64,000 bases of DNA from Mobula hypostoma (taxonomy: Eukaryota). Position 1 is the first letter of the stretch. Every line of letters starts with the position of its first letter. The DNA lies in NCBI RefSeq assembly GCF_963921235.1, contig NC_086104.1, positions 121,396,001 through 121,460,000 of the forward strand, in the 5' to 3' direction. This document shows, piece after piece, positions 718 to 47,313 of this stretch. The notes under the pieces are model-generated. The model was not told where the DNA came from. It worked only from the letters and a program-made list of their open reading frames with translations, and searched no databases. The position numbers were made by a program, and so were the translations under genes.

Positions 718-796
718 GCTGAACAAGAAATGGAATCGGAAAGCGGGAACTGGGGGCAGCTAGTGGGGAAAGAGGGCAGTGGGATCGGAGACTCAC

Positions 797-1156
797 CTCG
801 TACCAGGAGCACGGTCCCGTTCCCTCGGAGCAGCAGCCGCCGGTCGGGAAGGTGAACGGACGCCAGGCAGCGGTAGGTGTTAGAGTGGCTCGGGCGGAGG
901 TGCCGGACTTGGAGGGAGAGTCCCGTGCCGATCTCACTCTCAGGTAGGGCGTCTTCCCGCTGGGTTTCCTGTGGGGGCGGGTAGACGACACGTTCTTCTT
1001 CCCCCTCCTCCGTCCCGCCGATCACCCAATAAGGGTAGATTATCACCCGGGGCTCCGTCAGCCCCAGAACTTCGCAGTGCAGCGTCACGTTGGAGCCACT
1101 CGGGACCTCCAACCTCCGAGGCCACTGGGACACGTAGAGGGTGGCGAGCGAGATGT
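797..1156 (-). CDS. Ig V-domain exon with J-like GNGT motif (NKp30/CD28-family-like), left inverted paralog
   Basis: On the - strand: acceptor tgtgttacag|AC and donor CGAG|gtgagt. The exon is 360 nt, phase 1-1 and open. It carries LHC (B-strand Cys), PYW, TYRC and RGNGTVLLV. Confidence 0.9.
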
Positions 1157-13692: not shown

Positions 13693-16600
13693 TGTGTGTG
13701 TGTCAAGTTCGGACTATAGCAGTAAAGAACCATGAAACTTAGTTCCCATCTCCAGTGTTTTTATTAATAACATAGTTATGTAAATAGGCCACATACACAA
13801 CAAATTGGTGATGAGAATTATGAACCTACATCTTATCAGAACGCTGTGTTTTAGTTGATAAGGTCACGTACCCCGTGACGGGAATAAAGAACCAGCAGAG
13901 ATGAAAAACACTTTGGAGTCCAGTATTGCTATTAACTAATAATATTTATTAGTAACTACACAATACAGTAATATAAATGTAAATAAATCAAACAGGTTAG
14001 CAATGATTATACAGAATAATATATAATATGCAAGTATATCAGTAAGTGTGGAAATATATGTATGAAAAACCAAGCTTCTTTAAGTCTAGGGGTAAAAAGA
14101 TACGCTCTTATGATGATGAGTAAAGTTCAGTTCAGTTCAGTTTGTGGTATTTCGTTGAGTAGTGATGGGAAGAGAGAGAGAGAGAGAGAGATTTGAGTCT
14201 TCAGGTGAGCTGATGCAGTCGATCTTCTCGTTGTCCTTCGAAATCCTTTAAAAGTCACCGACTGTGACTTTAACAAAGGGGACCGGTTTTCTGTGGTGGA
14301 GCTATCCCCCAGGCGAGGGTGGACACATGGACAACTCCCCACCAGTCAACCCCTTTCTTTTCCACTGCAAGAGCAATGGATCAATCTGCCTGATTGATTC
14401 TCCAAAACCCACTTTTTCTTCGGGCACAACAATGCTTATTCAGTGTCCAGAACATGTGTCTGAGGTCTATCATCTGACCTCCTATTTTACCTTCCCGTGC
14501 TGAGCATCAACTGTCACTCAAATAACTCCTCCTTCCTCTCTCTGTGAAGAAAATGCAAGCAGGCAAAAGTCCTTGAAGAAGTATCAACAACCTGCCGAAA
14601 ATCATAACATCAATTGTCAATTTAATAACGCCCTCAGTCACCATAGCAACTTATGAGCTGCTTGGTGCTATCTCCACTTTAGCAGAAATCCAAAAGTTAA
14701 CGAGTTCTTTCTCGTGCCTTAAAGTGACAGTATAACAGTCAGTCTTTGTCTCTCTCTCTTCAAAACAAGATATCGATGTTAAATATCTCTCTCTCTCTTT
14801 TCAAAAGCACAGTTAATAGGGGTAATTGAGCACAGTTCAAAGGGGTAATTCAGGACCCCGTCACAATAATGACACTCGGAAAAGAGAGAGAAGGGAGATG
14901 AAAAGGAGTGACACACACATCCAGACGGAGTGCGCTCGTTGCGCTAGCAAAAAGGACATGTGAGTCAAGTGAAACGTGCAATGACGTGTCCCTGAAATGT
15001 GTAAAGAAAACAAGGAAAAATGGGCTAAATTATCATAACAAAGATGGCGATGATTGGAGTCATTACAGTATTTGATAGTGGCATTGAAAACTGGGTAACT
15101 TACATTGAAAAAGTGGAGTTATATTGTGATGCTAACAGTGTTAATGATGAAAAGAAAGCCAGCGTCTTACTCAGTGTTATGGGAGCAAAAACATTGGGGC
15201 TGCTGTGGAGCTTGTCAACCCCTGAGAAGCCAGCTGACAAAACGTTCAAGCAAATAGTAGACACTCTCAAAACAGCATTCAAACCCCAAACCACTGGTAA
15301 ATATTGTTGAAAGATTTAAATTTCACAAACGGAATCAGAGCAAAAATTAAAGCATTTCTGAATATTGTGCTGAGTTGTGCAAATTATCAGAACATTAACA
15401 GTTTGGAGCTGGTCTATCGGACACATTGAGGGACAGGTTAGTGTGTGGCCTGCACTGTGAAACCATACAGAAGAACCTCCTGTGTGAAAAAGACCTTACA
15501 TTAGAGAATGCGCTGAACATTGCAATATCACTGGAAATAGCAACAAAAATCTCTGGAATATGCTGCAAGTAAAATGTCACTGAACAGAAATGAAGGGAAG
15601 AAATGTTACCGCTGTGGGAGCATGTCACATGACACAGAGGACTGCTAGTTTAAAAACAAAGAATGCAGAAACTGTGCTAAACAGGGCCATATTGGCAGAG
15701 TATGCAAAGCTAGTAAACAGCAGAAAAAGGACAAAGTACAGAGAAACAAGAAACCCCAGAAAGGGAAACACAACAGTACACAAAATGAAGGAAAGCAGAT
15801 CTGATGAAAATGACTCAGACAAAAGTGAATTGTCTTGTCTGCAACTTCACAGTGTGAAAGAGACAGATGATCGAAGAGTAATATGGATCACTCCACAAGT
15901 GACAGGCACGAGACTGAAAATGGAGTTGGACACAGGCTCAGCTTTAACAGTGATCTTTGCACACGACTACAAATGACTGCCTCTCACATACCTCTGCAAC
16001 AAATGAAACTACTGCTAAAGACTTACACAGGACAGGGAGTGTGTCCCAAAGGTAAAATTAAAATGACAGTGACCTACAGAGACAAAACACAGCAGCTGAA
16101 CCTCTATGTACTGAAAACTGGAGGACAACCATTGCTGGGACGTGAATGGCTCAGGAAAATCCAGTTGGATTGGTACACCATCAAGGCACTAGATGTGTCA
16201 ACAAAGGAGGGCAGCAAGGCTACATCTGAGAGACTGTCACAAATACTTGCTGACTCTGAGGAAGTTTTCATGACAGGAACAGGAACACTTCAGGGCATGA
16301 AGGCAAAGACTGAGATTGAGGAAAATGCATGTCCAAAATTTCACAAAGCCAGACCAGTGCCATCTGCAATCCATCCACAGTAGAGGCAGAGCTGAAAAAT
16401 CTGGAGCAGACTGGGGTCCTGCCAAAGGTGAGTTAGAGTGAATGGGCCACGCTTATTGTTCCAGTGATGAAGAAAACCTCCAGCACAAAACCAGGAAAAC
16501 CAAGCAAGATGCGCATATGTGGAGACTTTAAAGTGACTGTTAATCCAGTTCTCCGCACAGTACAGTATCCTCTACCTTGTATTGAGGACATCTTTGCTTC

Positions 16601-18963
16601 TCTCTCAGGAAGGGAACATTTCACAAAAATCAATTTGGCCCAGGCTTATCTCCATACGAAAATCGATGAAGCATCTAAGAAATGGCTGAAATAAATGCAC
16701 ACAAAGGACTTTATCAGTACAATAAGTTGCTGTTTGGGATAGCATCAGCTCCTGCAATCTGGCAAAGGGCAATGGACCAGGTTCTTCAGGGGATTCCAGG
16801 GACCAGTGTTACCTAGATGACATCATTGTCACCAGCAAAGATGATGACGAACATCTTTCTAAACTTGAACAAGTGCTCACCAGGTTATGAGAATATGGGC
16901 TCAGAGCTAATCAACAGAAATGTGAGTTTTTCAGAAAGGAAATCTCATACTGTGGGCATGTGATCAACAAGGATGGCTGACACGTGTCTCAAAACAAGAG
17001 AGAAGTGGTGCTTAGGCACCGTCACCTGAAAATGTGTCGCAGCTGAGAGCATATCTTGGACTAGTGAACTGTTACCACAAGTTCTTGCCTAACCTATCCA
17101 CAGTCCTACACCCACTAAATGTACTATTACAGACAGGGACACGATGGAAGTGGACTGAGAGCTGTGAGAGAGCGTTTGAAGAAACTAAAATACTCATAAC
17201 TTCAGAAGGGGTGCTCGCACACTTTGACCCCTCTTTACCAATCCGACTGGCTTGTGATGCCTCACCCCATGGGATAGGAGCTGTGTTATCGCACAAGTTT
17301 CCAGATGGCTCAGAAAGACTTTGCCTCGAGAATGCTAACTTCAGCTGAACGCAACTACGTACAGATTGACAGAGAGGCCCTAAGCCTCATGTGGGGATTC
17401 AAGAAATTCCATCACTACCTGTATGGTCAAAAGTTTACCCTGTTGACTGACCATCAGCCTCTCGTGTCAATCTTCAACCCAAGAAAAGGCGTTCCAGTGA
17501 TGACACAGTGATGACAGTGATGATTGAACACAAGGGGACCAAGCAACATGGCAACGCAGATGGCTTGTCATGTTTACCACTACTGACTTCGGTGATAACT
17601 ACACAAATGGATTCAGCAGAGGTCTTTCACACAACAATAGGTGAACAAACAGCCTCATTGAAAGAGAAACACGCAATGACCGTATGTTGTCAAAAGTGTA
17701 TGACATCACAGTAAAGGGATGGCCAGCACGTGGAAACACTGTTTCCAGACTTCTCAGCAAGGAAGGAGCAGTTGTCAGTGTGTCGGGGAACAGTAATGTG
17801 TGGTTAAATGAAGACAATCACATAGGAAAATACCATTACAGTTCTGAGGGCCATGTTCGCCAGGAATGGCATACCAGAACAAATCTGCACAGACAATGGA
17901 TGACAATTTGTCTCTGAAGAATTCCAAAGTTTTGTGAAGAACAATGGAATCAAGCACTTTACATCTGCTCCTTACCATCCATCCACAAATGGCTTGGCAG
18001 AAAGATTTGTGCAGACATTCAAGAAAGCCGTCAAGGCAAGGGACAGCGAAAATCAATCACTGCAACACAAGATACACAACTTCATCCTTGCCTATCATAA
18101 TGCAGTACATGCAACCACTAATCAGACTCCAGCGATGATGTTTCTGAACAGGAACCTGAGATCCCGCATAGATCTTCTCCAACCAGATGTACGGCGTGAT
18201 GTGGAGAACAGACAGTTCAAACACTTGAACGCTAAGTCAACATGGAGCTTCAGTGAGGGACAGTCAGTTCTTGCACGTGATTACTCGACTGAAAAGTGGC
18301 AGCCGGGTACAATTTCCGCCATAGACAGGCCACTGATGTATGCAGTGGAGGTGGGAGAGAACGTATGGAGACGTCATGTGGACCAAATCCTGGATGCTCA
18401 GGTGAAAAACACAACACCTCGCCCAGAATCCCCTGACATAGAAGCAACACTCCTGATGTGACCACATCAGCCTCATCTACAGATAAGCCTGTCATCAGTG
18501 CTGATGTACCAGTGGAGACTCATTCCCCAAAGCAAACGTTTCAGGACAGACGTTACCCGGAGAGGCAGAGAAGGCCTCACCAGAGACTTGAGCTATAAAT
18601 GAGTCTTAGACCAAAAGTAAAAAGTTAAAAAAAAGCTTGTTATAATTTGATATTATTAAGTTACTTTGTTATAATTTGTAAACAAATGGTAGGCATTTAT
18701 ATGTTAAGGGTAAACATATTTGCTTAGCATAGTGCCCCAGATTTTAAAAAAACATTTAAAATAAAAGGGGAGGAGTGTACCGTATAGCTTACATTATAAT
18801 AAGTGACTACTTTATGTTTTACTAACGTGTTGTTGCATGCGCTATTAGGCGAGTATTGATCTGTTGTGTGTGTCAAGTTCGGACTTTACCAGTAAAGAAC
18901 CATGAAACTTAATTCCTGTCTGCAGCGTTTTTATTAATAACATAGTTGTGTAAACAGGCCACA
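13693..18963 (+). mobile_element. Decayed Ty3/Gypsy LTR retrotransposon (gag, protease, RT, RNase H, integrase)
   Basis: gag from 15044 (NWVTYIEKVELYC), protease MELDTGS, RT RICGDFKVTVN and YLDD, RNase [15 protein letters not shown], integrase HPSTNGLAERFVQTFK. Matching LTR segments at about 13693-13802 and 18776-18963, with PPT aaaaggggaggag. Many stops and frameshifts. Confidence 0.92.
13862..14865 (-). mobile_element. Solo LTR nested in the Gypsy leader
   Basis: Termini (g)gtcacg...gtcaca (TG..CA on - strand) with a 4-bp TSD ATAA at 13858-13861 and 14866-14869. Confidence 0.65.
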
Positions 18964-20423
18964 TGAGAATTACAAGACTTCGGGAACAGCGACACCGAGG
19001 AAGTATGGAATGGACACGATATGGACTCTGCAGGAGCCCCTAGCAGCTCACATGAGAATGACAGTGATGAAACAAAAAGATTGTCAACTATGTCAGATGA
19101 AACTATTGCTAATTAATTTATTGACAAGCTAGTGGCAGATCGATCAACTATTGCTCATTCACCTGCTGAAGGATGAACCTCTGATTCTCAAAGAACAACT
19201 GAAAGTTGACAATGTGTTCTGTCCTCCATTAAGTATCTGATACAGCTGTACTAAATTGTCAATGAGAAACAAATGATAAGTCTTAATTCAAGAACAGGAG
19301 ACTGACAGCATCATATTAGTTATTACTCTGCCAAAGATTTGATCCTATTCACTGAAGGTTCCTCAGTAATTCAAAGGGTTTCAAATGCCTGTTACTGGAA
19401 CGGAGGGTTTGATCAGGTAACATGAAGGGTGAATACCTGTACCTGGGGAGCAGTAAAGCTGTATGTATGGAATTGATCAATCTCAGTTCTCCCTGTCTGC
19501 TGAACAGTACTTATTGGGTATGTGATTACCAGACCTACCCCTGTTCCCCTAGTAGGAGGGGAGGAGAGAGCCGTGTCCCCGGAAGGCCAGCTATATCTTC
19601 CTTACAAAGTGCCCCACATGTGATATTTGGCAGCACTACCTCACCAGCCTCTGTTCCAGCACCAGAGGTCAATAAGATCCAGAGATTCTGATCAATTGGT
19701 CCATATCCCTGTTCATGTATATATCTAAGAGCCTTTTAAACACTCGTCATATCAAATTCAACCGGCACATTCCAGGAATTCACCATGAATGAAAACCTGC
19801 CTCGCACATCCCCTTTCAACCAAATTTATAGCTGCATTCCTCCTAGTGTTAGCCATTACAATCCCAAGGAAAAGATGGCGGCTGTCCATGCCTCTGGTAA
19901 TGTCATAAGATGTCCCCTCACTCTCAAACGCTCCACAAACAACCCCGTCAAACAGTGCAGCCACATTCTAGATTCCTCTGTACATCAACAGTGTTAATGG
20001 TCTGGCCTTTAACCGTGCACTGTCCCTTTACATTTGATCTCACAAACTCCAACACCTCAATTTGTCAGGACTGGACTTCATTGACTATCATCTGTGAACA
20101 CATTGACCCATACATCCAGCAGAAATTGTAGTACAGAAACCCTGCAGAACACCTCCAGTATTCCAACTGGAAGTCATTGACACCTGATCAATCACTATCC
20201 TGTCTTCTAAATCCAAACAGCCAACTTCTGATTCACAGCCAACTCACTGTTGATCCACGTATCTTAATCTGGATGAGCTTCCCATCAGGGATGTTGTCAT
20301 AGACCTTGTAGACAACATCCACAGCTCGACCTTCATCAATCACCCTTGTCACCTCTTCAAAAAATTCAATCAAGTCAAAAGAATCACACGACTTACTATA
20401 CACAATTCAGCCATGGTTTTCCA

Positions 20424-20446
20424 ATGAATACTAACCCAAAGGAACA
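20424..20446 (+). CDS. Putative exon 1 of an uncharacterised IgSF gene (MNTNPKEQ)
   Basis: ATG..CA|gtaaga donor, phase 2, matching exon 2. The Kozak context is weak and a more distant first exon cannot be excluded. Confidence 0.4.
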
Positions 20447-20548
20447 GTAAGAGCAGACAGTTGGACAGTTTCAGCTGTTCATGACTATCTGAGGTGGGAT
20501 CAGATTCTGCGGAGTTCACTCCTCACTTCAACCTATCTTTCTCCTCAG

Positions 20549-20595
20549 GTCCATCGCAGTCTGTGTGTGGCTGTTCATGGTCGTATCGGCTGCTC
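20549..20595 (+). CDS. IgSF gene signal-peptide exon (SIAVCVWLFMVVSAA)
   Basis: ctttctcctcag|G acceptor and CTC|gtaagt donor. Hydrophobic, ends in phase 1. Confidence 0.8.
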
Positions 20596-20887
20596 GTAAG
20601 TACAGCATAGCATAGAGAGAGAATCATTCTGTGTCTGATCCCTGTGATAGGACAGTGTGCAGGGAACTGCATTTCATCAGACCCATGGAGTGGGCAATGG
20701 GACATTGCAGAGGGAGTTTCACCCTGTATCTGGTTCCAGTATGGTATTATGGGGCAGTAGGGAGAGGGAGAGATTCATTGTTTGTCTGACCCTGAGGCTG
20801 TGATAGGGCAGTGTATAGGGAACCACTCTATGAAGGGGAGGAAGACCTCCCTCTGAACCCACTGACTAGATGCTCCTCTCCTGACAG

Positions 20888-21136
20888 GTGAACAGAGCCC
20901 CTGTAAGTTCATTCCAAACACCATCTCCCTCAGCTGTCCCTGCACGATATCCTGGTCCCAGATCCTGTGGCTTCACAACCTCCGACAGTTCCAGGATAAC
21001 TGCACCAGAGGCAAAGGCAACGAACTCCACTGTCAGATTGCCAGCCAGGCCAGGGTGGAAGCTGACAGAGTCACCCTGAACTACACCCGGGTTATCCCTG
21101 GCACCGTCTACTGTGAGATCTCCAGCAACACATCAG
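20888..21136 (+). CDS. IgSF gene Ig-like domain exon (83 codons)
   Basis: ctcctgacag|GT...CAG|gtaagt, phase 1-1, open. Motifs ISLSC, ILWLHN and TVYC, plus extra Cys. This frame is absent from the ORF track. Confidence 0.85.
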
Positions 21137-22059
21137 GTAAGTGCCAATGGGAGAGAGAGTACCGTGAGGGTCTGATACTCCAGACTGCCACCATTCCGAT
21201 GTTTATTCTCTCCGTGCCATTAGAGCAAGACTCTAGTTTCTAGATTCAGAACAGTACAACACACGAACAGGCACTTTGGCCCAAAATACTTTGTCAAATC
21301 GATTAAACCAGTAATTAACTCAGAACTAAATAACTCTCTTCTGCCTGCCCGATGGCCACGTGGCTCCAGTCTCTGCCTGATGGTCCATATCCCTTCCCAG
21401 TCACATCAGCTTCTAATAGGTTCCTTCACGTCTTAATCATATTAGAAATCAGAATTAGTTTATTGTGTCATGTGTACCAAGATAGTGAAAAGCTTGTCTT
21501 GCTCACTGTCCATACAGATCAGATCATTACACAATAGAACAAGGTTAAATAATGACAGGAAGCAGAAAAAAGTGTAGCAGCAACAGAGAAAGTGCAGTAC
21601 AGGTAAACGATAAGGTGATTGATGATAATCTATCTACCTATCATGACGAGGGTCATGGATGGGGTGAATACACATAGCCTTTCTCTCATGGTTATGCGGA
21701 GTTTTAAGCAGCATTTTCACCCAGAAGAAGGTCCATACATGGAATGAGCAGCCAGTTTGGTGCCGGTTACAATAACAACATTTAAAAGTCACACAGAAAG
21801 GTACATGGATGGGAAAGGTTTCAGAATGAATACAAGCCAATGGGACTGGCTCTGTTGGTTTGTCCCCAAAGGGCATGTTTCTATGGAGTGTGATTGTGTC
21901 ACTGAGTCCTGGGACAGACCAGCTCTGTGGGACAGGCTCACCCCTTGCTCCCTTTGCACCGAGCTCACCGCTCCTCCCCACAGGACTCATCCGACCTCGG
22001 AGAAGCGCGGATCGAAGGACAGCAGCTGGGCTCTGAGATGTACCTGCTGTGTTTTGAAG

Positions 22060-22206
22060 GTGTGGAGTGTCCCAGGCAGAGGACACAAGTAGACCAGTTG
22101 TCTATCCCACCACAGACAACATCTCGGAAGCCAGTATCCACTGAGACAGACGGAAGACAGGTGCAGGACAGAATTACGAGTGCACATGAGAAGATAGTAA
22201 TTGCAG
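22060..22206 (+). CDS. IgSF gene stalk exon plus start of TM (GVECPRQRTQ...EKIVIAG)
   Basis: gttttgaag|GT acceptor and GCAG|gtgaat donor. Phase 1-1, S/T/P-rich. Confidence 0.7.
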
Positions 22207-23073
22207 GTGAATTTCCACAGATTTAACAGTTTCTGAATGGTGAAATTCCTCATCATAATTCCAAAGTGACTTCCCTTTATCCCATCACAAACAGGAGAAA
22301 AGCTGCAGATGCTGGATATCCAAGCAGTGCACACAACATATTGGAGGAACTCGGCAGGCCAGACACCACCAATGGAAAAGAGTATGTCATTCAGGATGAA
22401 GGATCTCGGCCTGAAACATTGACTGTTTACTGTTTTACATAAATGTTGCCTGGCCTGCTGAGCTCCCCCAGCATTTTGTGTGTGTCCTTTATCCTGTTGC
22501 TGTTTCCTCGGATTCTGATGGAAATGTCCTCCCTGTGTCCACTCTATCCAGGACTTTCTGTATCCAGGAGGCTTCAATGAGACCCCCTTCCCTCATCATT
22601 CAGAACTCCCAGGAACATCAAACACTTCTCAGGAGTTATTGTGAACTTCTGGACTGACCCCCCGAATGGCACCTTTCATTCAAAGTAACTAGAAACACAC
22701 TGACCAACACAATATTCCAAATGCAGCCTCACCAATGTCTTGCACAACTGCAATGTAATGTTCCAGCTTCTATACTCAGTGACTTGACTGATGAAAGCCA
22801 GTGTGCCAAACACCTTCTTCACCATCCTGTCTACTGGTGACACCATGCCTACAGAACCCTGTACTTGCGATTTAGAAAGGGTTTGGAGAGATACAAAAGG
22901 CAGTGAAGATGGGGAGTAAGTGGGAGTATGGGATGGATGGAGGTACAGCCGGGATGGGTGTGGATGGTGATGCAGCCATGGGAGTGGGGAGGAGGATGGG
23001 TATCAGACTTTCCCATATCAATCGAGTATGTTTCTGGTCAAACCAGTCTAATTGTAACATTTCCATTCTACAG

Positions 23074-23119
23074 GGGTGGTGGGAGTCAGTGTGCTGGTTG
23101 TCCTGGTTGTCGTTCTGTG
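23074..23119 (+). CDS. IgSF gene transmembrane exon (GVVGVSVLVVLVVVLW)
   Basis: ccattctacag|GG...TG|gtaagt. Continues IVIAG into an uncharged TM helix. Confidence 0.85.
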
Positions 23120-23287
23120 GTAAGTAACCTTGTTGCTTCCTGGGGTAGCCTAGTGTTCAGCTCTCTCAACTGCGGCATCCTCGCTCGCCGTCCCTCCGGT
23201 GCCCCACCTCGCTCACTGTCTCCGTGACCCATCTCTGTCACTCAGTGAACAGACTCTCAGTGACCTTCCCCTCTGTTGTACCTCCAG

Positions 23288-23471
23288 GAAACAACGTCAT
23301 AAAATGTGTCCAAGATTGTTGGCCCGAATGGAGATGCAGAGGGTGCCAATGCACAGGGAGATCCCCACTATCAGCAATGTCGATACCTCAAGCAGTAGGT
23401 CCATCAGGTCTCCCCTCAGCCTCCGATACTCCAGAGGAATCTGCTCCAACCCATCCAATCATTCCACGTGA
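23288..23471 (+). CDS. IgSF gene cytoplasmic exon (KQRHKMCPRLLARM...NHST*)
   Basis: gtacctccag|G acceptor in phase 2 gives a basic stop-transfer cluster directly after the TM. TGA ends at 23471. Confidence 0.75.
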
Positions 23472-24316
23472 CTAAAGCCCCCACCACCTGATCCCGACAA
23501 CATCACAGGGTATCTCCTCGGCTCTCCCTCCAATGTGAGGCCAGCCTTCCTGTAGTGCAGTCAGCTGAAAACACAGTGATTGAAGTGCAGTCTGACCAGT
23601 ATCTTGTCGAGTTCTAACATAACATCCTAACTTTTACATTGCATACCCTGATCCCAGGGGTCTCTGTAATTGTATCCCACGGACTCTCTGTTCCACACCC
23701 CCAGTGCCCCATCATTAATTGTGGATGTTCTTCCTGAATTTGACTTGCCAGAATACATCACCTTGTCCTCATTTGTATTAAACTCCATCTGCCTCTCTCT
23801 GCCCAACTTTCCACCCGATCTGAATCCAAGCCAACCTTGTCAATTCTTATAGTTACCTCTTTAAAAAAACTTGTGGAGGGGAGGAATTCCCCTGTGCAAG
23901 GATGAGCTGAAAGGCCTGTATCTGTGCTGTATATTTCTGTGACATTCCAGGCCAACCTATTCCGGGTTGGAATTGACGGTTGTTTGTCTCCCAGGGGTCC
24001 AATGTATGGGGGGTGGGGGAGAAATGCTGGACCCCTGGGTGTACGTGCATCCCTGGGTCATCAATATAAACCCTGGCATAGGAGTCCTCGATATCAAAGA
24101 TCTTACTAAAGTGTATGTAGATAACATCTACCTCACTGCCCTTATCAATCCTTTTACCACCTTAAAAAAACTCAGGCAAATTAGATTGACAGGATGAGCT
24201 ACAAAGATGAGCTGAAGTGCCTGTATCTGGAAAATTCCGTGACTTTCCCAGCCAAAAGCCAGTCAGATCCATGGTTGTCCCTTGTAAATAGCACATCTCC
24301 CAGGATGTGCCATGTA

Positions 24317-44199: not shown

Positions 44200-44334
44200 N
44201 NNNNNNNNNNNNNNNNNNNNNNNNNNNNNNNNNNNNNNNNNNNNNNNNNNNNNNNNNNNNNNNNNNNNNNNNNNNNNNNNNNNNNNNNNNNNNNNNNNNN
44301 NNNNNNNNNNNNNNNNNNNNNNNNNNNNNNNNNN
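44200..44334. other. Assembly gap (135 N)
   Basis: N run. It lies at the position homologous to the (CT)n(CA)n microsatellite of the left paralog. Confidence 1.
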
Positions 44335-45160: not shown

Positions 45161-45520
45161 ACAACTCCCTCGCCACCCTCCACGTGTCCCAGTGGCCTCG
45201 GAGGTTGGAGGTCCCGAGTGGCTCCAACGTGACGCTGCACTGCGAAGTTCTGGGGCTGACGGAGCCCCGGGTGATCATCTACCCTTATTGGGTGATCGGC
45301 GGGACGGAGGAGCGAGAAGAGGAACGTGTCATCTACCCGCCCCCACAGGAAACCCGGCCGGAAGACGCCCTACCTGAGAGTGAGATCGGCACGGGACTCT
45401 CCCTCCAACTCCGGCACCTCCGCCCGAGCCACTCCAACACCTACCGCTGCCTGGCGTCCGTTCATCTTCCCGACCGGCGGCTGCTGCTCCGAGGGAACGG
45501 GACCGTGCTCCTGGTACGAG
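45161..45520 (+). CDS. Ig V exon 1 (V1) of NKp30/CD28-like receptor
   Basis: tgtgttacag|AC...CGAG|gtgagt, 360 nt, phase 1-1. Canonical C/W/C, with RGNGTVLLV. Confidence 0.92.
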
Positions 45521-46701
45521 GTGAGTCGCCGGTCCCACTACCCTCGTTCCCCACTAGCTGCCCCCAGTTTCCCGCTTCCCTCCTGGGATCCGATCCCATA
45601 TCATGTTCAGTTTTAATATATATAATTTTCCTGACTTGCTGGGTTAGATCCTAGTCTCTAACCGGGTCACGGGTAGTGTATCTGTGTATCTTTGGATAAA
45701 TTGTGGAAATCTGAGGGAATGAGGGAGCTGGAGAATTGTTGTAGGAGAGAAGGAGGAGGGGACGCCTGAGGAGGAGAGGGAAATGTCACGGATACGGATG
45801 GAATGGGAGGAGGGATATGGGGAGAAGTGGGAGGGTTAAGCAGACTTTGCTCGATTTGGGGCTGTGTTTGCCGAACGATAATTGTTTAAAATGTCGTTCT
45901 GTGGTCTTTCCTGATGCAGCAATAAGCATTCCGGTCTATATTTGCAAACAAAGGGGACAACTGTACACATGTTAAACGACAATAAATTGTTTTACTAGGG
46001 TTATATAAACATGCAATGCAAAAAGGAAAACGAAGGGTTTATGATGTCGCCAAAAACAAACACTTCTCGTCCACTGAACGAACTGATCTGCAGATGCCGG
46101 AAGGAATCACAGATACCACAAACTTTCAGTTCTTTCCCTCTCTCTCTCTCTCTCTCACTGGACGTAATTGTCTCTATCTTCGCTAACTCTTACCATTATC
46201 ACTGGTCGTAACGTGGTCTGATGGAAAATTCTCCCCACTTGCACAAAGATTACCCGTATCTGCACCCTTCAATATCCCTTTAAAACTCTAACAGAACTCA
46301 TACCCCAGAGCTCTCCCTGATGGGTCACTGTTTGGTACCTGAACAAAGGCCTCGCCTTCCCCACACAAACTTGTATTAATCCATGATCTACTCTCCAGGC
46401 TGGTGACTTGTACTCATTCAACTTCCTCAAATCAGTTCCACTCCGGGTTAACACCATGTTCTCTGGCGGACTTCCTTTTTATTTTGGCACATACCAAGGA
46501 CGAATCATGTTTAACTCTTTCCTTACAGTTTGAGATCACTCCACGTTTAATCTCTGCCCCTCCCATCCTCTTTCTCTGTACAGACGCTCCTTTACTACTC
46601 CCCCCTCCCTGTGTTGCAGACGCTCCCTCACTACTCTCTCCACTTCTCTCCATGTGTTACAGACGCTCCCTCACCATTCTCCCTCTCTCACTGTGTTACA
46701 G

Positions 46702-47061
46702 ACATCTCGCTCGCCACCCTCTCCGTGTCCCAGTGGCCTCGGAGGTTGGAGGTCCCGAGTGGCTCCAACGTGACGCTGCACTGCGAAGTTCTGGGGCTGC
46801 CGGAGCCCCAGGTGATAATCTACCCCTATTGGGTGGTCGGCGGGACAGAGGACGAGGGAGAGGAACGTGTCGTCTATCCGACTCCCGAGGGATCCCGGCA
46901 GCAAGATGCTCTCCCTGAGTGTGAGATCGGCACGGGACTCTCCCTCCAACTCCGGCACCTCCGACCGAGCCACTCCAACACCTACCGCTGCCTGGCGTCC
47001 GTTCATCTTCCCGACCGGCAGCTGCTGCTCCGAGGGAACGGGACCGTGGTCCTGGTACGAG
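46702..47061 (+). CDS. Ig V exon 2 (V2) of NKp30/CD28-like receptor
   Basis: Same splice context and length as V1. Diverged C'-D region and an extra Cys (PECEIG). Confidence 0.92.
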
Positions 47062-47313
47062 GTGAGTCGCCGATATCTCTCCCCTCGTTCACTTTTCACC
47101 GCCGCCTACATGATTCCTCCTGGGACTGGATCGCAGGTCCATTTCTGTTATTTCATATATAACCCCTCCCCCAGAACGCTTGGATTGGATCCCAGCCTGT
47201 AACCCACTCCCAGCAATGTTATTCTCTATATAAACCCCTGAACCCTCAGAATACAACCCATCCCTAGCTCGCCTCGGTAAACCGTCTCACTCTGAACTCC
47301 GATTTACTCTCAG

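Follow-up and report, generated by a model that had tools for sequence, protein, structure and literature searches.

No lineage with antibody-type immunity is older than the cartilaginous fish, whose non-rearranging V-domain clusters help to reconstruct the origin of antigen receptors. Among V-like domains of the immunoglobulin (Ig) type, that of VpreB ends after strand F, without the J-encoded G strand. In the chondrichthyan CD28 family, the FG loop carries a P-[P/L]-P motif followed by GxG, the transmembrane segment a YxxxxT motif and the tail a tyrosine motif, and the CD28-like genes of cartilaginous fish form a separate three-gene cluster (PMC11599192). Here we describe a locus of the ray Mobula hypostoma lying within a stretch of 64,000 nucleotides (C22:121,396,001-121,460,000, contig NC_086104.1; the whole stretch is referred to as the window), for which an initial annotation had proposed a hidden six-exon gene coding for a type I membrane protein with an unusual Cys-rich Ig domain, placed between two NKp30-like genes. 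The locus is very likely one copy of a multigene family of small type I membrane glycoproteins, and batoids are the only animals in which this family has been seen to date.

The family was found by a six-frame search of the M. hypostoma genome with the 82-amino-acid peptide of exon 3 as the query. This search returned 15 further copies of the exon (16 in total with the window copy), all of them between 121.16 and 121.77 Mb of C22, and no significant match elsewhere in the genome. The 15 paralogous copies show 34 to 86% amino acid identity and almost all are open. Nearly every copy has kept the exon-3 splice sites, both the acceptor (..tctcctgacag|GT) and the donor (TCA G|gtaagtg), and many copies have neighbouring leader, stalk, and tail exons that follow the same order. 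A profile built from 13 copies (alignment A1) and compared with 1.84 billion representative proteins retrieved 11 true relatives with E values from 1e-19 to 1e-42, all labelled "uncharacterized protein" and all from batoids, namely M. hypostoma itself, M. birostris, Hypanus sabinus, Hemitrygon akajei, and the sawfish Pristis pectinata (Table 1). For membership in the family typified by LOC134350231, the family-profile E values were 1e-20 to 1e-42. Two unnamed proteins from ENA (P0014 and P0015) gave weak profile matches through a tandem YLHSWGCAYQD.C.LGEG..LQ motif that is like D-x-C-x-x-G-x-G, probably by chance. The author of the initial annotation had recognised no orthologue, a view that gives way to a family of about 16 copies with annotated relatives in five batoid species. 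No relative was found in sharks, skates, or chimaeras by the protein profile search, which is weak evidence, since most copies are unannotated even in Mobula; as far as the sequences available so far indicate, the family appears to be restricted to rays and sawfish. We found no description of it in the literature. It can be taken as a real but unnamed family, to which the RefSeq models assign no function.

The RefSeq models of batoids resemble the window copy in several respects. Their domain is 35 to 91% identical to that of the window copy, with the same Cys pattern, transmembrane segment, and exon phases, and they share the stalk motif CPRQRT..D.LS.PP. The models P0005 (on the paralogue L020) and P0017 (on the Hypanus locus L032) have an Ig-like exon of phase 1-1, a stalk exon of phase 1-1, a transmembrane exon ending in phase 2, and a tail; the window copy fits this exon order and these phases, as well as the family pattern C-x10-CPC...D-x-C-x-x-G-x-G-x-x-L-x-C...L-x-Y...YCEI. 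However, the models have a first exon of their own, of the MA[VF]C..LQ..TFR type, whereas the window copy lacks it and has its own frameshifted tail. None of them bears a name, a Pfam domain, or a described function. One protein of Hypanus sabinus (P0016, LOC132385355, 367 amino acids) contains two full units, domain-stalk-transmembrane followed by leader-domain-stalk-transmembrane-tail, and is probably a read-through fusion of two tandem genes.

We rechecked the exon junctions by reading positions 20200-23700 of the window and by scripted joining of the six proposed exons. The model was reproduced exactly: each exon is bounded by AG and GT, the lengths sum to 696 nucleotides with phases 2, 1, 1, 1, 2, and the product has 231 amino acids (Table 1). 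The features listed for this product in the initial annotation were borne out as well. It has a type I layout of leader, one Cys-rich beta-sandwich domain, stalk, uncharged transmembrane segment, and tail; the mature ectodomain carries seven Cys (residues 29, 40, 42, 62, 72, 99, and 110) and three N-glycosylation sequons of the N-x-S/T type (N61, N88, and N104); no charged residue occurs in the span of the hydrophobicity peak at about residues 152-170; and neither an immunoreceptor tyrosine-based inhibitory motif nor an immunoreceptor tyrosine-based activation motif is present in the product. Its N-terminus is hydrophobic, and by its sequence the product of the window copy is a type I protein of the secretory pathway.

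Table 1. Features at and around the locus, with paralogue loci and annotated relatives (positions are those of the window unless C22 is given)
Feature	Position	Strand	Remarks
Retroelement open reading frames (gag/pol/integrase-like)	~15029-18458	+	Upstream of the gene
Exon 1 (initial annotation)	20424..20446	+	MNTNPKEQ, 23 nucleotides, phase 2; doubtful
Exon 2	20549..20595	+	Signal-peptide hydrophobic core SIAVCVWLFMVVSAA, phase 1 end
Exon 3	20888..21136	+	Cys-rich beta-sandwich (V-like) domain, phase 1-1, 6 Cys, 3 sequons
3' part of intron 3	21628..22074	+	92-93% identical in L021-L026; start of the homogenised 3' module
Exon 4	22060..22206	+	Pro/Ser/Thr-rich stalk, opens with an unpaired Cys (VECPRQ), phase 1-1
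Exon 5	23074..23119	+	Uncharged transmembrane segment VVGVSVLVVLVVVLW, phase 2 end
Exon 6	23288..23471	+	Cytoplasmic tail
NKp30-like VJ-type V exon	786-1130	-	Pfam V-set E ~1e-7, GNGT J-like motif
NKp30-like VJ-type V exons	45187-45531, 46728-47072	+	Pfam V-set E ~1e-7, GNGT J-like motif
Paralogue locus L020	C22:121.3128-121.3228 Mb		
Paralogue locus L021	C22:121.1529-121.1629 Mb		
RefSeq relatives, M. hypostoma			LOC134350231 (= L020), LOC134350892 (= L021)
RefSeq relatives, M. birostris			XP_072123318/9
RefSeq relatives, Hypanus sabinus			LOC132385339/41/55
RefSeq relatives, Hemitrygon akajei			Several proteins
RefSeq relative, Pristis pectinata			LOC127587166

Exons 2 to 6 of this model are correct family homologues, far beyond what chance would give: paralogues share the same splice sites, other rays have RefSeq models of the same kind, and RNA-type contigs match them. 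Exon 2 is conserved with its acceptor and donor in L017, L018, L020, and L030, and its peptide is also found in the RefSeq proteins P0002, P0005, and P0007. The stalk exon (exon 4), predicted to be disordered, has homologues among the stalk exons of paralogues and in RefSeq proteins from four species; skipping it keeps the reading frame, and stalk-less RefSeq isoforms do occur (P0001 versus P0019; also P0002). Another acceptor before this exon, at about 21984, was discarded because the required phase meets a stop. Exon 5, in which the hydrophobicity peak falls, is 93% identical to the transmembrane exon of P0005, and Hypanus has the same exon in the same phase. In the window copy, all five of these exons are open, with their GT-AG sites intact and every conserved Cys kept.

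Contigs from four runs of other organisms, which are only guessed to be RNA, were aligned on positions 19500-24300 of the window. In runs X2 and X1, contigs over exon 3 reach depths of 108-452 versus 4-5 for contigs of the flanking introns; one of the exon-3 contigs begins at 20885 and one stops exactly at 21136. Their differences from the window (N37T, G41D, and G71R) are those of P0002 of M. birostris, so that the reads come from the gene of a close relative. A contig of run X17 matches 20547-20594 (exon 2), is unlike the sequence before it, continues with 31 other letters, and then rejoins exon 3. These 31 letters are the exact start of exon 3 of the paralogue L015 and show, for one member of the family, splicing of exon 2 to exon 3 at the sites that had been predicted. 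The family is transcribed in relatives.

The initial annotation had called the ectodomain an Ig domain. What stands of this is a predicted beta-sandwich whose weak structural matches lean towards V domains; on the other hand, the domain matches no Pfam model, its Trp is not conserved, and no G strand is predicted. Six Cys are conserved (C5, C16, C18, C38, C48, and C75), with an extra Cys next to C48 in one subfamily, together with the motifs D-x-C, G-x-G, L-x-Y, and YCEI. As in V-set domains, Cys are found on the predicted strands B (LSC, C16) and F (TVYC, C75), and their spacing of 59 residues falls within the range of about 55-75 that is usual for this pair. C16 does not vary, and 11 of 13 copies have C75. 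Also as in V-set domains, one phase 1-1 exon behind a split leader codes for the whole domain, and the same holds in Hypanus and in the paralogues. The Trp of strand C, which in V-set domains follows the Cys of strand B by about 11-14 residues, is another matter: the window copy has W27, but most paralogues and other species have H, Q, R, or Y at this position. A G strand of V-set type is not predicted either; exon 3 ends 7 residues past the Cys of strand F, and no FGxG or GxGT J-like motif is present.

AlphaFold applied to alignment A1 gave a best model with a predicted local distance difference test (pLDDT) score of 84 and nine strands, which can be assigned to A, A', B, C, C', C'', D, E, and F. 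When the stalk was included (22 sequences), the same strands were predicted, again with no G strand, and disorder set in at the stalk Cys, with pLDDT below 50 from residue 92. Structure searches were run with Foldseek against PDB and Swiss-Prot and with VIA-align against 48,161 chains, and the best matches were mostly V domains: CD28 (TM-score 0.64), ICOS, CTLA-4, nanobodies, CD8 alpha, and domain 1 of nectin-2. In features of evolutionary scale modelling (ESM), the domain is nearest to Ig clusters (0.88-0.90). The family profile also matched the Ig repeats of a teleost FcRL5-like protein with an E value of 3e-6, but the hhalign probability was 9.7%. Considering the fold matches together with the split leader, the coding of the domain by one phase 1-1 exon, and the setting within a cluster of the Ig superfamily (IgSF), the domain can be read with moderate confidence as a degenerate V-like Ig domain truncated after strand F. 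This predicted lack of a G strand would be shared with VpreB; however, VpreB is a soluble protein that keeps the canonical Trp and is picked up by V-set models, and the batoid family has no known partner that could donate a strand.

The window copy is a mosaic. Its 5' half (20403-21236) is closest to L017 and L019, at 85%, whereas positions 21628-23476 are 89-93% identical by blastn to L021-L026, genes whose Ig exons are only 52-55% identical to that of the window copy in protein. A 5' half of subfamily A is therefore joined to a 3' half that is 89-93% identical to genes of subfamily B. This high identity of the 3' part, set against the divergent Ig exons, suggests that the 3' modules are homogenised by gene conversion or unequal exchange. 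Over the 3' part of intron 3 where this module starts, runs X1 and X2 have paralogue-type contigs of 655 and 1185 nucleotides at depths of 44-56; the segment may reflect intron retention, an alternative exon, or a tract of gene conversion. On exon 3, the ratio of non-synonymous to synonymous substitution rates (dN/dS), calculated by the Nei-Gojobori method, was 0.9-3.3 between close paralogues, the maximum of 3.3 being that of the window copy versus L004 (17.5 non-synonymous versus 1.5 synonymous), and 0.34-0.51 versus the distant L010; the values of single pairs are not significant. The pattern would fit long-term constraint combined with recent diversification or relaxation.

Taken together, the family genes have a leader spread over two exons and then one exon each for the domain, the stalk, the transmembrane segment, and the tail. 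The domain exon would encode a compact Cys-rich sandwich that resembles above all an Ig V domain cut short after strand F; it would have two more Cys pairs besides the B-F pair, and would lack both a conserved Trp and a J-like G strand. In most members the stalk exon opens with a free Cys, and the end of the short tail exon was recruited from a transposable element. The products would be glycosylated surface molecules raised on a mucin-like stalk. In the initial annotation, the odd number of Cys had been taken to suggest a disulfide-linked dimer. The odd count is correct for the window copy but does not extend to the whole family, in which one subfamily has the extra Cys (as CC) and some members lack the stalk Cys. 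Copies with six domain Cys plus the stalk Cys would be left with one unpaired Cys and would probably form disulfide-linked dimers through the stalk. A two-copy homodimer prediction of the domain gave a chain that did not fold (pLDDT 30), which speaks neither for nor against a dimer. Since there is no signalling motif and no charged residue in the transmembrane segment, the products may act by binding, as a ligand, decoy, or co-receptor, rather than by signalling themselves. The family would be diversifying quickly, like families of immune receptors and ligands.

What may be new here is an IgSF-like receptor family with an atypical domain, of which the locus is an apparently unannotated and possibly defective copy. 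The family, which codes for small membrane proteins, has expanded beside NKp30-like genes to about 16 copies, and sawfish and stingray-type rays are the only animals in which it was detected. Provided that its proteins are made, they would be candidates for lineage-specific immune ligands or receptors and would illustrate in nature how much a V domain can lose; the domain escapes every curated Ig model and seems to be without the last strand. For annotation, the consequence is that most copies of the family, the window copy included, are missing from the public gene set.

Several results weigh against this reading. The curated Ig models of Pfam (V-set, ig, I-set, Ig_2/3) gave no match to the exon-3 peptide at E values up to 10 and none to eight full-length relatives at E values up to 1, and Pfam as a whole showed no Ig or other domain in the three larger exon peptides or these relatives, with sub-threshold matches only (e.g., Adeno_E3 at an E value of 0.001); a sequence profile search of PDB gave no match either. 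AlphaFold was confident in only one of five models when given exon 3 alone, the structural matches are weak (Foldseek E values of 0.1-0.5, TM-scores of 0.45-0.64, Z scores of at most 5.2), and shape searches of the AFDB clusters and the Atlas returned generic beta-sandwiches only. A dN/dS near 1 is also expected from relaxed constraint, and the predicted loops are not significantly more variable than the strands (p=0.17). The contigs bear on the genes of relatives, so that transcription of the window copy and its first exon are outside their reach, and cover of exon 4 at 93% likeness or more was not found among the contigs of the four runs. Two word-based database searches covering the length of the product found no protein from the window copy; in this respect the locus is apparently the unannotated gene that the initial annotation took it for.

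To these points are added the problems of the first exon. The segment proposed as exon 1 finds no support: its ATG and GT donor are unique to the window copy and no better than chance. The paralogues L017, L018, and L020 read ATT for the ATG and TTTCAG for the GTAAGA donor, and in paralogues this sequence is ordinary intron. The Kozak context of the ATG is weak (C at -3), and no covered exon was found at this position among the contigs of the four runs aligned on 19500-24300. The segment is possibly a new start codon, possibly a product of chance. In the family, the first coding exon lies 1.3-1.6 kb upstream of exon 2, as in L020 (MAVCAVLQLDTFR) and L017 (MAFCTILQSNTFR). Neither this exon nor any family N-terminus was found in the window by blastn with the upstream regions of L020 and L017, by motif scans, or by tblastn with eight N-termini. 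Positions 19386-19417 (MPVTGTEGLI followed by GT) were considered as a first exon and rejected as a weak look-alike, with no alignment to L017 or L020. Extended upstream of exon 2, the reading frame runs into stops without any ATG; since the family first exon is absent as well, the window copy needs either the start at 20424 or another, unrecognised exon. Homology with L017 ends at window position 19999, and an insertion or rearrangement in this retroelement-rich stretch may have removed the first exon. A fragment of a dispersed repeat occupies 20200-20380, just 5' of exon 1, and contigs of all four runs end at 20307; the apparent RNA depth in the bin 20305-20465 is due to this fragment.

The last of these points concerns the tail. 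Stingray proteins have a common tail ending in ..REIPLSAV.IPQAA.PSGLPSASDTPEESAPT.PITPHD, and the window tail is shifted by 1 nucleotide relative to this conserved frame after REIP (about 23363-23366). One additional base after REIP gives the six-exon model a different end of 35 residues, and the stingray-type sequence (PLSA..IPQA..PSGLPSASDTPEESAP..) is found at 23365-23472 of the window in a different frame. In L020 and L021, the annotated Mobula paralogues, the old frame is kept and runs into a stop (V*MEM) before MEM, by which the conserved end is lost; this stop may be a common tail-less variant, and the codon at its position in the window copy is CGA (Arg). As annotated paralogues have lost the conserved tail in this way, its loss seems to be tolerated in Mobula. 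From about 23397 onward, the tail is of dispersed-repeat origin: sequences matching positions 23397-23442 and 23491-23620 occur at dozens of sites across many chromosomes, which implies that the tail end was recruited from such a repeat before the split of stingrays and devil rays. The stingray tail end SASDTPEES, acidic and rich in Ser and Thr, resembles an acidic cluster of the casein-kinase type and could steer trafficking; in the window copy, it is out of frame.

Whether the window copy is functional is uncertain. Given that no family first exon can be recognised and that the tail is out of the conserved frame, it may be either a variant gene with a new start or a young pseudogene. The latter, a copy that lost its first coding exon and promoter, acquired the 1-nucleotide frameshift in the tail, and whose other exons have not yet decayed, is a serious possibility short of a probable one. 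It would account for the absence of the canonical exon 1 from all 20 kb upstream in the window, for the end of the L017 homology downstream of retroelement open reading frames (about 15000-18500), for the frameshifted tail, and for the lack of annotation of this copy while L020 and L021 are annotated. Other copies are plainly broken as well, through a TGA in L015, frameshifts in L012 and L013, and tail stops in L021. However, the five homologous exons are open, with all the conserved Cys and intact splice sites, a usable in-frame ATG and donor 100 nucleotides upstream would yield a plausible signal peptide, and the annotated paralogues also do without the conserved tail.

Returning to the family as a whole, its position beside NKp30-like genes raises the question of a link between them. 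The claim that the window copy lies among NKp30-like V-domain genes was confirmed. NKp30-like V exons gave 13 matches, about 11 of them distinct, confined to C22:121.367-121.470 Mb, and the window copy is the only member of the Cys-rich family inside this sub-cluster, the other 15 copies lying outside, from which it follows that the two families were not duplicated as pairs. The neighbours resemble the family in being linked genes of type I proteins, with leader, V, and transmembrane exons and phase-1 domain exons, but they have true V-set domains with a GxGT J-like motif. The family itself has neither this J-like motif nor the charged transmembrane residue of activating NKp30 forms, and in profile comparison it shows no similarity to the neighbouring NKp30-like V domain, so that it does not belong with NKp30 (NCR3). 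It is unlikely that its members are ligands or partners of the linked NKp30-like receptors, as B7H6 is of NKp30, or that the G-strand-less domain is completed in trans, as in VpreB-lambda5. This idea draws on the location between NKp30-like V-exon genes, on the lack of a predicted G strand even with the stalk included, and on the fast evolution of close paralogues. Nonetheless, there was no paired duplication, the profiles of the two domains are not similar, and nothing tested supports the link to a ligand or co-receptor raised in the initial annotation. A wider version of the idea is likewise improbable: a new class of truncated V-like proteins (strands A-F, three disulfides, a free stalk Cys) whose fold would be completed or stabilised only by pairing, as a covalent homodimer or with a partner strand from the cluster, and which would evolve fast while serving the linked NKp30-like receptors of rays as ligands or decoys.

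Less probable still, and disfavoured, is a divergent member of the CD28/CTLA-4/ICOS or CD8 families. The top structural matches (ICOS, CTLA-4, CD28, and CD8 alpha) point in that direction, and so does the layout shared with the covalent homodimers CD28, CTLA-4, and ICOS, with one V-like domain, a Cys right after it, a transmembrane segment, and a short tail. However, these matches are not significant (E values of at least 0.1, Z scores of at most 5.2), and there is no Pfam match to V-set or to the ICOS V-set. None of the motifs of the chondrichthyan CD28 family, i.e., the PPP or P-[PL]-P type FG loop, GxG after strand F, YxxxxT in the transmembrane segment, and the tail tyrosine motif (PMC11599192), occurs in the 231-amino-acid product or its relatives. 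The batoid family also lacks the G strand and has another genomic setting than the three-gene cluster of the CD28-like genes (PMC11599192). With CD8 alpha/beta, the family has in common a V-like domain, a long Pro/Thr/Ser-rich stalk, probably O-glycosylated, and a Cys for dimer formation, and chicken and catshark CD8 alpha were among the VIA matches (Z scores of 4.2-4.9). In contrast to CD8, its Cys stands at the top of the stalk instead of the base, its tail lacks the Lck-binding CxC motif, and it shows neither a G strand nor any similarity in sequence to CD8. The probability is negligible that open frames and splice-like sites came together by chance to give the six-exon frame: exon 1 alone could be due to chance, but for exons 2-6 the idea is refuted by the paralogues, by homologues with the same phases in five species, and by the RNA-type contigs.

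Two further observations concern the window around the gene. An assembly gap (44200-44334, 135 N) lies just before the neighbouring gene with two V domains. Within intron 4, a repeat like a short interspersed nuclear element (22237-22558) has summed contig depths of about 4,000-42,000 in runs X2, X1, and X10 and of 535-2,777 in X17, and many contigs end loosely at 22395, 22429, and 22485. The repeat belongs to a family that is highly transcribed in rays and forms no part of the gene.

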